The notes below the pieces were generated by a model that saw only the letters and a list, made by a program, of their open reading frames with translations, did not search any database and was not told the origin of the DNA. The translations under genes and the position numbers were made by a program. DNA of 63,526 nucleotides, counting the filler, from Octopus bimaculoides (lineage: Eukaryota): NCBI RefSeq assembly GCF_001194135.2. It is 10 parts of 9 records of this genome, joined end to end, with 100 filler letters (N's around TTAATTAATTAA, not from the genome) between each part and the next. Parts side by side here need not be neighbours in the genome. Positions count along the whole stretch, not along the records: positions 55,503 to 62,229 come from NC_069008.1; 9 more parts are not named here. One strand, 5' to 3'. Of the stretch, positions 55,375 to 62,329 are shown in pieces. Position 1 is the stretch's first letter; every line of letters starts with the position of its first letter.

Positions 55375-56251
55375 CATACATATATATTTATATATATATA
55401 TANNNNNNNNNNNNNNNNNNNNNNNNNNNNNNNNNNNNNNNNNNNNTTAATTAATTAANNNNNNNNNNNNNNNNNNNNNNNNNNNNNNNNNNNNNNNNNN
55501 NNGTCTTGGTTTGTGTTTGCCACCTTGGAATCCTCTGTGTAGTGGATTGATCCACTACTCAGGAAGAGACTATTCTAGAGTACGTTCTGTCTTATCTTCG
55601 AAACGTCTAGATAGAATAGAGACAGCTGATGAAGGGATATTCCAAGTGGCTTTCCGTTTTCCTATGTGTTCGTTCCGTTGTCTGTAGTTTATTGTTCTAA
55701 CGTCCTGTACCCTGATATGCATGTATATACACATGTAGATGTAAGTATGTACATATATGTGTGTATACATGTATATATATTCTTTGTATTATATATATAC
55801 ATATATATATATATATATACATACATGCATACATATATGTATATATTTATGAATATATATGTGTGTGTGCATATGTGTATATGTGTGTATGTTCTTTCCT
55901 ATCTGTTCTGGAAGCATACTTTTGCAGACACGTATACACCCAATGGGAAATTCTGCCTATAAAATTACATCACAAGGATTCGGTGTGTGTGTGTGCTTAT
56001 ATTTATATACACAGACACACAGACACACACACAGACATATGTACATAAAGATCAGCATCATGAATATCCCTTAACTGATGCAGCCAGTCACTGGGGCACC
56101 GCTGTGGATGCCTTCATAGTCAGCCGGCACCACTGGTTTCTGTTCTCTGTCATGCATAGCAGGTTCACTGTGTTGCGACCTGTGCAGTCCTTGATGTTGT
56201 CAAACCAGGATTTTCCCTCCTGTCTGCTTTTGTTTTGCAGAGAGAGAAGTA

Positions 56252-56311
<60 letters not shown>

Positions 56312-56646
56312 GTATGCATATATATATACATATGTATGTATGCTTATCTATCTATCTATATATATANNNNNNNNNNNNNNNNNNNNNNNNNNNNNNNNNN
56401 NNNNNNNNNNNNNNNNNNNNNNNNNNNNNNNNNNNNNNNNNNNNNNNNNNNNNNNNNNNNNNNNNNNNNNNNNNNNNNNNNNNNNNNNNNNNNNNNNNNN
56501 NNNNNNNNNNNNNNNNNNNNNNNNNNNNNNNNNNNNNNNNNNNNNNNNNNNNNNNNNNNNNNNNNNNNNNNNNNNNNNNNNNNNNNNNNNNNNNNNNNNN
56601 NNNNNNNNNNNNNNNNNNNNNNNNNNNNNNNNNNNNNNNNNNNNNT

Positions 56647-57197
56647 TACTTGTTTCAGTGATTTGACTGTGGCCATGCTGGAGCACCACCTTTAGATGAG
56701 CAAATCGACCCTAGGACTTATTCTTTGTAAGCCTAGTACTTATTCTATCGGTCTCTTTTGCTGAACCGCTAAGTTACAGGGATGTAAACACATCAGCATC
56801 GCTTGTCAAGCGATGTTGGGGGGACAAACAGTAGCTTGCTTACCAACCACATGGTTCCGGGTTCAGTCCCACTGCGTGGCACCTTGGGCAAGTGTCTTCT
56901 ACTATAGCCTTGGGCCGACCAAAGCCTTGAGTGGATTTGGTAGACGGAAACTGAAAGAAGCCCGTCGTATATATGTATATGTTATATATATGTGTATTTG
57001 TGTATCTGTGTTTGTCCCCCCACCATCGCTTGACAACCGATGCTGGTGTAGTTATGTCCCCATAACTTAGCGGTTCGGCAAAAGAGACCGGCTTACAAAG
57101 AATAAGTCCTGGGGTCGATTTGCTCGACAAAAGGCAGTGCTCCGGCATGGCCACAGTCAAATAACTGAAACAAGTAAGACAGTAAAAGAGTAAAGAG
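56647..57197. mobile_element. Two SINE-A pieces fused in opposite orientation
   Basis: Minus-strand tail at 56647-56829 joined directly to a plus-strand, slightly 5'-truncated copy at 56830-57197. Confidence 0.9.
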
Positions 57198-58056
57198 TAT
57201 ATATATATATATATTCAACACTGAGTTTGTGTGGTTTCCCTTAAAGATAAAATAGTTGAAACAACATGGTCATTTTGTAAGGAAACCTTCAATAAAATAA
57301 ACCTAGGTTTTCTTCTAAACACTGTTCTTTTTTTATTGCAAGTTCCTTTAATTGTAAGATGAGTCTAGCCGTGTGGTTTCAAAGACATTATATATTATAC
57401 ACAGAACAGCATAAACATTCATTAATGCAAAAAATAGGAAGTGAAATATTATATGGTATAATCATCTTTATAGCTGAAATTTTGATCCTACTATTGCCAA
57501 GATTTTCCGTAACTAGTAAATAAGCATTTCCCTACAGACCATAGATATATGATATTTAATAGAATTATCTGAAAGATGAATTATATTTCCTCCAAAAGTT
57601 TGCCAATATCAACAAAAGAAATTGGTTCAGTATGAACACACAGAACTACTTCTATGTAGTTGCAACCACCACATCTGCCTTCTCAATTGTATGTATCTTC
57701 TTTCTAATACTTTAGGTCATTCTTTAAATGAGTTAGATCATGAGTTATTTATGGCTTACTGAAAAGTCATTTAAACAAAACATTTTTGCAACATATGTAT
57801 GTGTCCAGACACTCAGAAAGACGCTTCACTACTTCACTCAAATATATCTGGAGTGTAATGGATGGAAGTATTAACAATTTGCATCATTCACATTATATGC
57901 CACGGGCATGTGGTGTAGTGGTTAAGAGCGCGGACTACTAATCCCAAGATTCCGAGTTCAATTCCAGGCGGTGATCTGCATAATAATAATAATAATAATA
58001 ATAATAACATCGAAAAATACCTTAGGAATGAGAACCCAGGTTTGAAATTTTCCCAA

Positions 58057-58102
58057 GACACCTGATGAAGGGTGGAGGGTATATCAGATGAAATGTTGTG
58101 TT
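58057..58102 (+). ncRNA. Minimal type I hammerhead motif (copy 1, helix II damaged)
   Basis: GACAC-CTGATGA-A-GGGTG..CAGAT-GAAAT-GT-T-GTGTT; aligns base for base with copy 2. Confidence 0.6.
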
Positions 58103-58178
58103 AACAACAAACAAGATGAGGACAAATATCTGTCAAATGTAAATAATGTACATAATTCCTCATCTCTTAACTACAGAA

Positions 58179-58213
<35 letters not shown>

Positions 58214-58271
58214 CAACAACAACATCAAAAAATACCTTAGGAATGAGAACCCAGGTTCGAAATTTCCCCAA

Positions 58272-58317
58272 GACACCTGATGAAGGCTGGAGGGTATATC
58301 AGCCGAAACATTGTGTT
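58272..58317 (+). ncRNA. Minimal type I hammerhead ribozyme motif (copy 2)
   Basis: Helix I GACAC/GUGUU, core CUGAUGA plus one extra A, helix II GGCUG/CAGCC with a 10-nt loop, then GAAAC-AU-U. Helix III has no loop (dimer type). Confidence 0.75.
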
Positions 58318-58754
58318 AACAATAAACAAGATGAGGACAAATATCTGTCATATGTAAATAATGTACATAATTCCTCATCTCTTAAATGTAGAATGTATTT
58401 TTTTCTTGTGAATTATTTGCTCGAAACACGGAGTAGATGAAACAGGGACACCTGAAGAAGGGGTCTATTCTTTATGTTGCATGTCTCGTTTCTCTGTTTG
58501 TTTTTTACGTTGTTCAAAAAAAAGTTCGTTTTCTATGTTTTCGTTTCTCATTGTGTTTAACGTTTTATTTTATGTCCTGTGGCTCATCTGTTTTCCTATG
58601 TGTTCATTCTGTTGTCCGTAAAAAAAAGTCCGTTTTTGTGCTTTGTTCCCGTTCCTTTTTTGACGTCCTGTACCCAGATATGCATCTATATATACATGTA
58701 GATGTAGGTATGTACATACATGTATGTATACATGCATACGCTCATATATCTCTT

Positions 58755-59213
58755 TTACACTTTTACTTGTTTCAGTCTTTTGACTGTGGCCATGCTGGAG
58801 CACCGCCTTTAGTCGAGCAAATCGACCCCAGGACTTATTCTTTAGAAGCCTAGTACTTATTCTATCGGTCTCTTTTTGCCGAACTGCTAAGTTACGGGGA
58901 CATAAACACACCAACATCGGTTGTCAAGCGATGTTGGGGGGACACACATACAAACATATACACACACACACATATATATATATACACATATACNNNNNNN
59001 NNNNNNNNNNNNNNNNNNNNNNNNNNNNNNNNNNNNNNNNNNNNNNNNNNNNNNNNNNNNNNNNNNNNNNNNNNNNNNNNNNNNNNNNNNNNNNNNNNNN
59101 NNNNNNNNNNNNNNNNNNNNNNNNNNNNNNNNNNNNNNNNNNNNNNNNNNNNNNNNNNNNNNNNNACCATGTGGTTGGTAAGCTAGCTACTTACCACACA
59201 GCCACTCCTACGC
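58755..59213 (-). mobile_element. SINE family A spanning an N gap at its internal microsatellite
   Basis: Tail at 58755-58960, gap at 58994-59166, head at 59167-59213. Confidence 0.85.
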
Positions 59214-59921: not shown

Positions 59922-60310
59922 GTGGAGGCGCAATGGCCCAGTGGTTAGGGAAGCGGACTCGCGGTCATAGGATCGCAGTTTCGATTCCCAGACCGGGGCG
60001 TTGTGAGTGTTTATTGAGCGAAAGCACCTAAAAGCTCCACGAGTCTCCGGCAGGGGATGGTGGCGAACCCTGCTGTACTCTTTCACCACAACATTCTCTC
60101 ACTCTTACTTCCTGTTTCTGTTGTGCCTGTAATTCAAAGGGTCAGCCTTGTCACACTCTGTGTCACGCTGAATCTCCCCGAGAACTACGTTAAGGGTACA
60201 CGTGTCTGTGGAGTGCTCAGCCACTTGCACGTTAATTTCACGAGCAGGCTGTTCCGTTGGTTGGATCAACTGGAACCCTCGACGTCATAAGCGACCGAGT
60301 GCCAACAACA
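59922..60310 (+). mobile_element. tRNA-derived SINE family B, full length with 10-bp TSD
   Basis: A/B boxes (TGGCCCAGTGG; GTTTCGATTCCC) and (AAC)n tail; GGATGTGTAA flanks both sides (59912-59921, 60311-60320). Confidence 0.92.
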
Positions 60311-60599
60311 GGATGTGTAAAGACTTTACACTGCAGTTTGTCATGGAGAATATTACCTGGAAGTCTTCTGTCATGCATCTGTGACCCCTTCAGCGACCCT
60401 TTCCATCCACATGTATACTCCTGCTCCGCTTAGTCCATGGAGTAAAGGTTGCTGAAGAGGTCACAGAGGTGTGATGAAAGATTTCCAAACAATGGACATA
60501 AGATAAAATAAGAACTGTAATAAATGGATGTGTGTGTTTATCTGGCAAAAAAAAAATCAAATAACACTGACATCTCATTTTAACAAATATATTTAGCAA

Positions 60600-61360
60600 T
60601 GTTACATAAAAAATATCTTGAAATACTAAAGAGTAAGTTTATTCAATAAAATTGCCATTGGCTTCAACCATGGCCTCCAGATGACTTCAGAATCTCCTGC
60701 AACTCTTCTGGATGGTTTCCTAGTTTAGGTTGGTGAATGCTGCCATAATTCTTGCCTTAAGTTCATATTTGGTGACAAAAACCAAAGCATGTTTGGTTGG
60801 AGGGGATGCTTGAGTTTGTTCAAAAGCTTCATAGTGTAGTCTTTCCTCTTGTCCTTGATGGCTCGGGATAAAAATTGGCCCTTTCTCATCTTATATGAGG
60901 AATATTAAATGTTTCCATGCACTACCTGCCTGATAAGAAACTCAGATACTCTCATGTCCCTGGCGATGGACCTGATTGACTTGGAAGGATCATTGTCAGT
61001 CATAACCTGAATCTCACCAAGAAATTCAAGAATTCTTTTCTTATCAGAACGATCAAGGTGAGTTTCCGAGCTGCTATATCCTTGTAATCACCATTAGACT
61101 CACCCAACTCTTTCTGAATCCTCTGCACTGTCCTCAGATTGACATCCAAACACTCTGAAATGTTTGTATCGGAGATTCCGGCATGATTGCCAAGCAACAC
61201 ATGTCATTTCCAAATTTTTGGCAGAGTGAATTGCATCATGGTGCTGTTTTTCTGACAGATGGTACCCAAGTGACCCTACTATACTGTGTATAGTAGGGTC
61301 AAAAACAAACATTGCGCATGTGCAAAATTAAAAGTATAAAATGGCGACAGTTTACCCATT
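60600..61360 (-). mobile_element. Internally deleted Tc1/mariner (maT-like) element
   Basis: N-terminal LDVNLRTVQRIQKEL..DNDPSKSIRSIARDM..YKMRKGQFLS..KLLNKLKHPLQPNMLW is joined directly to C-terminal ELKARIMAAFTNLN..SHLEAMVEANGNFIE*. 5' end TACAGG...CTGTCGCCATTTTATAC at about 61335-61360; the other TIR is unclear. Confidence 0.75.
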
Positions 61361-61770: not shown

Positions 61771-62329
61771 TACATATGTATATACACATACATATTTATA
61801 TGCATATATATATATAGAAGAAGAAGAAGAAGAAGAAGAAGAAGAAGAAGAAGAAGAAGAAGAAGAAGAAGAAGAAGAAATGATGAAGGAGAAGAAGAAG
61901 ATGAAGTATAAAGAAGCTAAAAAAGAAGATGAGGAAAAAGAAGAAGAAAAGGAGGAAGAGGGAGAAGAAGAAGGAAGACAAAAATGAAGAAGAAGAGGCG
62001 GCGGAAGAAGAAGAAGAAGAAGAAAAAGAGGAGCAAGGAAAGAAGGCAAAGCAGAACAGCAAGTAGCAGCAGCAGCAGCTTCAGGTTTGGTCGGATTCGG
62101 TGCCAAAAACATCAGATCACTTCTGTGGAATTGGTGGAAATAGGGTCGGTGTTTGTTGATGTTACCTGGAACGGGGGTGTAGGCGGTTGGGTTTGGGTTT
62201 GGGTTTGGGTAAGGGCTGGTCGAGTTGGGNNNNNNNNNNNNNNNNNNNNNNNNNNNNNNNNNNNNNNNNNNNNTTAATTAATTAANNNNNNNNNNNNNNN
62301 NNNNNNNNNNNNNNNNNNNNNNNNNNNNN

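Follow-up and report, generated by a model that had tools for sequence, protein, structure and literature searches.

Retroelements that join an RNA polymerase III (Pol III) head to a hammerhead ribozyme are known so far mainly from blood flukes. The schistosome elements Sm-alpha and Sj-alpha are tRNA-derived, resemble short interspersed nuclear elements (SINEs) and carry a type I hammerhead (PMC2770079, PMC4918200, PMC8490949). They are short, non-coding and high-copy, and their copies are both dispersed and tandem (Ferbeyre 1998; Laha 2000; via PMC2770079 and PMC4918200). Here we describe a composite of this kind from a mollusc, Octopus bimaculoides. It occupies positions 57904–58394 (+) of a 63,526-nt stretch of DNA from RefSeq assembly GCF_001194135.2 (the window), within a piece contributed by NC_069008.1 (55,503–62,229), and consists of a tRNA-related head followed by two head-to-tail units. 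This single locus of the window is referred to as the 57904 copy. The composite is a SINE with a hammerhead, Sm-alpha-like in kind, found in a new phylum and equipped with a minimal ribozyme. We think it likely, with some reserve, that the 57904 copy belongs to an old, CpG-decayed, multi-copy cephalopod SINE family that has a minimal hammerhead in its body and would integrate in a Penelope-like manner, this copy itself being probably inert.

The octopus family shares with Sm-alpha and Sj-alpha, whose hosts are flatworms, the Pol III tRNA-derived part, the type I hammerhead, the short non-coding build, the high copy number and the occurrence of both dispersed and tandem copies. The Sm-alpha ribozyme is described as canonical, with a short helix III of its own and loop–loop contacts, whereas helix III of the octopus family consists only of ACGU, as in the minimal Penelope type. 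The tRNA part of Sm-alpha lies within every repeat, whereas the octopus copy carries its head once and repeats only the body. Unlike Sm-alpha, the octopus family additionally has a Penelope-like insertion pattern, the two being compared here by description only.

Minimal hammerheads of Penelope-like elements have an unpaired base after A9, a G10.1–C11.1 pair, a long helix II, a short helix I and a palindromic 15.2–16.2 (Cervera and de la Pena 2014, PMC4209133). The octopus consensus agrees with them in its core boxes, unpaired base, G10.1–C11.1 pair, 6-bp helix II and 3–5-bp helix I. It likewise has no helix III loop and a palindromic C15.2–G16.2, and would be expected to act only as a dimer. 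The known Penelope hammerheads lie in the pseudo-long terminal repeats (pseudo-LTRs) of coding elements or were taken as relics of truncated ones, whereas the octopus motif is the cargo of a promoter-bearing SINE. Animal non-LTR retrozymes (PMC7229834; bioRxiv 10.64898/2026.07.22.740005) are, like the octopus family, short non-coding head-to-tail repeats with type I hammerheads, and a Penelope-like dependence is proposed for both. Animal retrozymes are described as having no promoter and no motif that reveals an autonomous partner (PMC7761336). They are tandem as a rule and yield highly paired circular RNAs, whereas in the octopus family a Pol III head is present, octopod copies are mostly monomers and the monomer RNA is predicted to be weakly structured.

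Classical tRNA-derived SINEs, such as OK, OR1 and OR2 of octopus (Ohshima and Okada 1994, via PMC4758252), resemble the family in their 5' head with A and B boxes, non-coding body, dispersed copies and common 5' start. The octopus family differs from them in that no tail derived from a long interspersed nuclear element (LINE) was identified, in that its body holds a ribozyme, and in that its copies often abut in inverted orientation or form partial tandems. The Ceph, MESC and CORE SINE domains were considered as a match and rejected, no hammerhead or likeness being described for them (PMC5786205, PMC4758252). A literature search found no paper on a hammerhead in a cephalopod SINE; Repbase and Dfam lay outside its scope and may hold an unannotated entry.

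The 57904 copy and its immediate 3' flank comprise the following features, with counterparts in related loci (L numbers) where relevant.

57904..57979 (+): SINE head of 76 nt, tRNA-related, with Pol III type-2 promoter boxes and an anticodon-loop-like CTACTAA, identified by reading of the sequence
57911..57921 (+): A box TGGTGTAGTGG, from sequence reading and pattern match; counterpart TGGCATAATGG in L014
57954..57965 (+): B box GAGTTCAATTCC, from pattern match; counterparts GAGTTTGATTC in L006 and TAGTTCAATTC in L014
57980..58007 (+): linker (ATA)9, found by Tandem Repeats Finder, an expansion of the short AATAATAA of relatives
58008..58179 (+): body copy 1, reaching the family 3' terminus ...ACAGAAC; the 3' ends of relatives diverge past AGAAC
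58048..58051 (+): TTTT, a C-to-T change private to this copy and a possible premature Pol III stop
58057..58102 (+): hammerhead 1, degenerate, with core boxes present, helix II broken and GAAA-UG-UU; predicted cut after 58097
58180..58221 (+): duplication junction, in which TGA, from the end of the head, runs into linker (ATA)n(ACA)n; in L006 head and linker meet at CTGAATAATAA
58222..58394 (+): body copy 2, a 5'-truncated second copy with its 3' terminus intact
58272..58317 (+): hammerhead 2, fitting the minimal descriptor except for CA at 15.2–16.2; predicted cut after 58312
58398..58404 (+): T7 run in flanking DNA, 3 nt beyond the 3' end of the element and absent from relatives

A single long-period array is detected at 57980–58385 (period 215, 1.9 copies, 92% matches; Tandem Repeats Finder), and pairwise alignment of the two 215-nt units gives 93% identity without internal gaps. 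A preliminary description of this locus had placed the head, units, boxes, T7 and TTTT correctly; all were re-read in the sequence at the same positions, and the predicted cuts of its two head-to-tail units do lie 215 nt apart. Within 57904–58410, no run of at least four T occurs apart from the TTTT in unit 1 and the T7. At the TTTT position relatives have GAAATTCCCC, GAAATTTCTC and similar sequences, and the run is indeed private to the 57904 copy among the relatives compared.

The hammerhead motif of unit 2 reads GACAC / CUGAUGA (58277–58283) / bulged A / GGCUGG-AGGGUAUA-UCAGCC / GAAA (58305–58308) / CA / UU. Helix I has 5 bp, with GUGUU at 58313–58317 as its 3' strand. Helix II has 6 bp, a closing G10.1–C11.1 pair and an 8-nt loop, and an unpaired A follows A9. 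There is no helix III loop, and U16.1 and U17 are both present ahead of the predicted cut. A minimal-hammerhead descriptor that required these elements and left 15.2–16.2 free found unit 2 as its sole match on both strands of the piece, and nothing in 3000 shuffles. Unit 1 has identical boxes 215 nt upstream, yet fails the descriptor: three changes leave its helix II as G-U, G-A, G-G, U-A, G-C and G-U, with G10.1–U11.1 in place of G10.1–C11.1. The earlier proposal of a minimal type I hammerhead in each unit is sustained for unit 2 apart from positions 15.2–16.2, and for unit 1 in its boxes but not in its helix II. The hairpin GUUGU-GUUA-ACAAC was considered as helix III and rejected, as no U16.1–H17 follows it.

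At positions 15.2–16.2 unit 1 has TG and unit 2 has CA; neither is palindromic alone, and they are complementary to each other. TG and CA are the two deamination products of CpG, so an ancestor with GAAA-CG-UU was expected, and the family consensus bears out this prediction from the 57904 copy: 12 aligned DNA copies give ACAC-CTGANGA-A-GGCTGG-loop-TCAGCC-GAAA-CG-TT-GTG. CUGANGA, GAAA and helix I, the parts by which the preliminary description would have the family judged, are all retained in this consensus, as is helix II, and the palindromic CG is present. The CUGANGA and GAAA boxes are kept in nine of the 12 copies, and GAAA-CG-UU in seven. Applied to 75 kb (the window plus the non-redundant loci), the descriptor gave seven matches, all of them in the hammerhead module and five with CG at 15.2–16.2. 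Translated copies retain PE/PD-E and K at the core boxes, where K corresponds to the AAA of GAAA. The next codon encodes R (CGU) in 18, H (CAU) in 26 and C (UGU) in six of 53 such copies, a series that corresponds to CGU plus its two CpG-decay products.

Helix II is 83% paired across the family. In pair counting over helices I and II, 79% of cells are paired, compared with 20–52% when partners are slid, with no excess over column shuffles. The sole clean compensatory pair is 10.4–11.4: octopod-type copies have U-A and copies of the sister type described below have C-G, with U-G intermediates, and the position is never unpaired. The family body consists of the hammerhead plus GUGUUAACAA...TAYAGAAC, and a consensus dimer would be cut after GAAACGUU. 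The family consensus has the full motif of a Penelope-type minimal hammerhead, with most copies decaying neutrally, as dead transposons would. Rfam hammerhead models, including Hammerhead_1 (RF00163), gave no match in the piece, none at E up to 10 on 581 nt, and none in the relatives. We read the absence of Rfam matches as a sign that the models do not cover hammerheads that lack helix III, or degenerate heads.

The head and the body are joined in other copies of the family. Relatives were collected with the translated unit (the open reading frame, ORF, of the body) as search handle, and the contigs were then fetched; because the handle covers only the body, it does not bias whether a head is seen upstream. 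In a protein search, unit 2 in stop-free translation matches two O. bimaculoides entries that translate other unit copies. When 1.84 billion cluster representatives were searched exhaustively with HMMER, 67 proteins were returned at E ≤ 0.001, and those inspected were all spurious ORFs crossing copies of the body module. Approximately 15 DNA copies, in unrelated flanks, were examined, the octopod-type loci coming from Logan runs SRR11869384-94 and those of a sister family from ENA assembly ERZ21867824. A protein search with the junction ORF found no matches, and neither did a DNA pattern scan of JGI metagenomes. A six-frame concatenated query also gave no matches and is uninformative, having missed P0001 (84 bits by the plain query), probably because it was swamped by low-complexity words. 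No DNA was obtained through P0001 or P0002. The octopod-type loci are as follows.

L006: a pair of diverged copies with 73% mutual identity, the head being joined to the body in both via a short linker, GAATAATAACAT
L014: a single body preceded by a head and an A/T-rich linker
L012: half of a head, with the B box, in the correct position
L002: head with an internal deletion, starting GGGCATATGG
L013: contig that begins within the linker
L004: 5'-truncated copy

Homologous heads stand at the same position in L006(+), L006(-) and L014, and the heads of relatives retain A and B boxes at tRNA-like spacing. BLAST alignments are collinear across the junction (57900–58183 against L014 446–758; 57935–58160 against L006 250–446). 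The flanks are unmatched between loci, and the similarity is confined to the element.

In the sister family, an A/B-box head of its own is followed by a linker of 35 nt, a 5' body of 87 nt and between one and three hammerhead units, each 126–129 nt long. All five copies with a 5' body (L001, L011 minus, L015, L016 plus and L016 minus) also carry the head, and these copies are 82–96% identical (range for body5b). Octopod and sister families are 74–82% identical over 68–88 nt, comprising the hammerhead and approximately 30 nt after it, and the hammerhead module is the best-conserved part between them. L012 bridges the 5' bodies of the two families, and the first 30 nt of their heads are approximately 67% alike as judged by eye rather than by alignment.

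The single head in front of two units, and the failure of Rfam to find either a tRNA or a hammerhead, might suggest that an unrelated SINE head lies by chance next to a short satellite containing a hammerhead-like string. The head–unit junction, which the preliminary description proposed to follow in other copies, is found again in no fewer than three further independent octopod copies and in 5/5 sister copies. These occurrences exclude chance adjacency for practical purposes, and together with the 0/3000 shuffles that contain the motif they leave this explanation exceedingly improbable. As judged from the sequences compared, the element is a dispersed, multi-copy one with common 5' and 3' ends.

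A pattern of A box, 25–45 nt and B box, expressed as a regular expression, has one match in the piece and none in 2000 dinucleotide shuffles. With default settings ARAGORN called no tRNA in the heads of the 57904 copy, L014 or L011, and the Rfam tRNA model matched none of the same three heads. Relaxed ARAGORN settings identified the L014 head as tRNA-Ser(ACT), amid many false calls. The head may bear a likeness to tRNA-Ser. Of the tRNA-like head with A and B boxes that had been proposed, the boxes are upheld and a recognizable tRNA is not.

The 3' ends of octopod copies agree to ...TAYAGAAC and then diverge. Body 1 of the 57904 copy stops exactly at this terminus (58179) and is followed by TGA-ATAATAA..., the last bases of the head plus linker, with no flank between the first and second elements. 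This order indicates a full element directly followed by one that retains no more than the final 3 nt of its head. Arrays in the sister family show the same relationship at their borders: every unit ends at the 3' end of the element itself (...TTTAGACAAC), and the next begins within the 5' region. Such tandems would arise when a reverse transcriptase jumps from the 5' part of one RNA template to the 3' end of another. The T7 run has no counterpart in relatives and lies 3 nt past the terminus of body 2; it is flank rather than a conserved terminator. It could nevertheless act as a Pol III stop for this copy.

The preliminary description regarded the locus as a candidate SINE–retrozyme hybrid. 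A working non-LTR retrozyme locus, from which a dimer would be transcribed and cut twice to give a 215-nt monomer circle as a rolling-circle template, would account for the head-to-tail arrangement of the two units and the 215-nt spacing of their predicted cuts, for helix III halves that are complementary to each other (AUGU in unit 1, ACAU in unit 2) and for the sister-family arrays of two or three units. However, helix II of unit 1 is broken at G10.1–C11.1 and at two further pairs. The 215-nt RNA between the cuts has a minimum free energy of −31 kcal/mol and a z-score of −1.04, with 31 of 200 shuffles folding as well; it is mostly unpaired, including approximately 45 nt of microsatellite, whereas published retrozyme RNAs are more than 70% paired (PMC4918200). 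This poor structure makes a retrozyme circle from the 57904 locus unlikely. The other octopod loci (L002, L004, L006, L012, L013 and L014) carry single bodies in direct orientation. Furthermore, the head stands at one end of the array and the junction re-uses its last bases, which is not expected from a circular template. The retrozyme part of the original proposal finds no support: with monomeric octopod relatives, a dimer made of a full and a truncated copy, a T7 in the flank and a damaged unit 1, we consider a working retrozyme very improbable. The complementary helix III halves make a single cut after 58312 conceivable, and not the release of a monomer. With helix II of unit 1 broken and an internal TTTT, the 57904 copy is probably inert, at most one cut, after 58312, being plausible.

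Abutting 5'-to-5' inverted pairs occur at five of approximately 14 insertion sites in the relatives. Such pairs are far commoner among the relatives than chance allows.

L002 774–845: inverted 3' part, 19 nt before a full copy
L004 738–822: both copies truncated, overlapping by 1–2 nt
L006 1–235: two full copies forming an inverted pair
L011 9716–10005: head-bearing copy abutting a three-unit array
L015 892–962: inverted member beginning no more than 1 nt from the predicted hammerhead cut (…GAAACGTT/GTGG, the slash marking the cut)

The members of a pair overlap in element coordinates and so cannot have come from the two parts of a single RNA, as twin priming would require. Partial tandems are found in the 57904 copy, L001 and L011. 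Penelope-like elements are described as forming partial tandems and as having an inverted, 5'-truncated copy adjacent upstream (Craig et al., PMC8557442), and the insertion architecture of the relatives agrees with that description. With respect to mobilization by Penelope-like machinery, which the preliminary description had put forward, a Penelope-like insertion pattern is thus seen in the relatives, and a partner with a shared end was not found, so that mobilization by this route stays at the level of suggestion.

Several observations weigh against a Pol III-driven SINE that integrates in the Penelope manner. An autonomous Penelope-like element with the same ribozyme or 3' end was not encountered, and both the piece and the fetched loci are devoid of Penelope-like coding sequence; such reverse transcriptases as lie close to the relatives are all RTE-type LINE fragments. 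One related insertion event ends in A9–A10, which is LINE-like and unexpected for a Penelope-type insertion. The 57904 copy has no inverted partner upstream, the alignment score there equalling the shuffle mean, and it has no clear target-site duplication: a weak 9-nt pair, ATTATATGC at 57892–57900 and ATTATTTGC at 58412–58420, is not flush with the ends. The sample of examined copies is small. At the head, both tRNA detectors (ARAGORN and Rfam) fail, and use of Pol III is suggested solely by the A and B boxes. In the hammerhead, pairing is no higher than in column shuffles and covariation is not significant, and most of the variation is neutral CpG decay. Helix II has two CpG sites, and the W/R/Q codons found there combine as independent decay predicts, with 67% paired and 69% expected.

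The LINE-related sequences themselves are decayed. RTE reverse transcriptases at L011 2000–3450 and L015 16300–19100 end in ...WRERVR[ED]IRAS followed by (ATG)n or (TA)n, and RTE LINE fragments are common in the sister-family genome. Two short sister-family copies, at L015 650–724 and 892–962 (minus), end at an internal A-rich site that is extended to A9–A10. Their flanks are alike, and they are probably one event that was later duplicated.

An ordinary LINE-dependent tRNA SINE, in which the hammerhead is a passenger from a Penelope-like end with no role in mobility and the arrays result from template jumps of a LINE reverse transcriptase, would fit the abundance of RTE fragments near the relatives, the one A-tailed event and a hammerhead under neutral CpG decay without significant covariation. 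SINE bodies are, moreover, known as mosaics (PMC5786205). Yet comparison of RTE LINE 3' ends with the SINE revealed no shared tail. The five abutting 5'-to-5' pairs at approximately 14 sites, with their overlapping coordinates, are unlike twin priming of one RNA, and the hammerhead module is what is best conserved between the two families. We therefore regard LINE dependence as an unlikely, though serious, alternative to the favoured Penelope-like integration. Even so, Penelope dependence of the family as a whole is a proposition to which we give slightly less than even chances.

The surrounding sequence of the piece is AT-rich, laden with microsatellites and interrupted by assembly gaps. A repeat family, B, is found at 55585–55786 and 58406–58756, the second copy beginning directly after the T7 and containing an internal duplication of approximately 104 nt (58466–58570 and 58571–58675). 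Repeat B and the SINE body share a 17-nt sequence, AGACA[G/C]CTGATGAAGGG (55620 and 58446; also 58056 and 58271), preceded by TTCGAAAC. Neither a helix II nor GAAA follows the CUGAUGA of repeat B, which may be a rearranged relative of the hammerhead module. The GAAAC in repeat B was considered as a half-hammerhead and rejected, being part of the B-box-like TTCGAAAC and lacking helix II or GAAA after CUGAUGA. We also rejected the T7 as the poly(A) tail of a neighboring minus-strand repeat B, as a T run is absent from the corresponding border of the other B copy.

Another, very abundant tRNA-headed SINE is located at 56646–57190 and 58750–59212, in direct and inverted orientation, its copies interrupted by runs of N at 56368–56645 and 58994–59165. 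Fragments of this SINE occur in the Logan loci at 79–88% identity, which ties those runs to an octopod. A third SINE-like element at 59925–60310 has a head (GGCGCAATGGCCCAGTGGTTAGGG...GGATCGCAGTTTCGATTCCC) that is approximately 65% like the 57904 head by eye, and no detector called it. The region 60520–61330 (minus) contains stop-ridden frames with a weak HTH_23 match (E = 0.007, below the cut-off) and is possibly a decayed Tc1/mariner-type transposase. An (AGA)71 microsatellite lies at 61816–62029, and four TTGGGT repeats are found at 62187–62210, at the very end of the piece.

Under the favoured reading of a hammerhead-bearing SINE with Penelope-like integration, a family member consists of a tRNA-related head of approximately 76 nt, a short A/T-rich linker and a body of approximately 175 nt containing a hammerhead without a helix III of its own. 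Pol III would start at the head and stop at a T run in the flank. Kojima has pointed out that a ribozyme behind a SINE head would cut the promoter from the 3' end, which poses a problem (PMC5786205). In the octopus family, helix III is only ACGU, so that the ribozyme would form only when two copies pair; given this dependence on a dimer, a single SINE RNA would remain uncut and retain its promoter. Reverse transcription would be carried out by machinery prone to template jumps and to inverted second copies, and integration by a Penelope-like reverse transcriptase and endonuclease rather than by a LINE, as suggested by the inverted pairs and partial tandems.

A bolder form of this reading, which we put forward as no better than tentative and on balance doubtful, is that the octopus and sister families represent the first SINE superfamily mobilized by Penelope-like elements, conserved across cephalopod lineages, with the hammerhead as a handle that is recognized or processed by that machinery. 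If so, the dimer dependence of the ribozyme keeps a lone SINE RNA from removing the promoter it carries, and many of the dispersed minimal hammerheads that stand as 'orphans' in animal genomes belong to SINEs as cargo rather than being relics of truncated Penelope-like elements. Dispersed minimal hammerheads have been reported in animal genomes by the thousands, and the family would explain where some of them come from. A short and tractable element of this kind makes the role of the hammerhead in Penelope-type retrotransposition, and the mobilization of RNAs in trans, open to experiment. If the partner is instead a LINE, the family would still be a second, independent case of a hammerhead-carrying SINE after schistosome Sm-alpha, and it adds a ribozyme-bearing member to the SINE-rich genomes of cephalopods.

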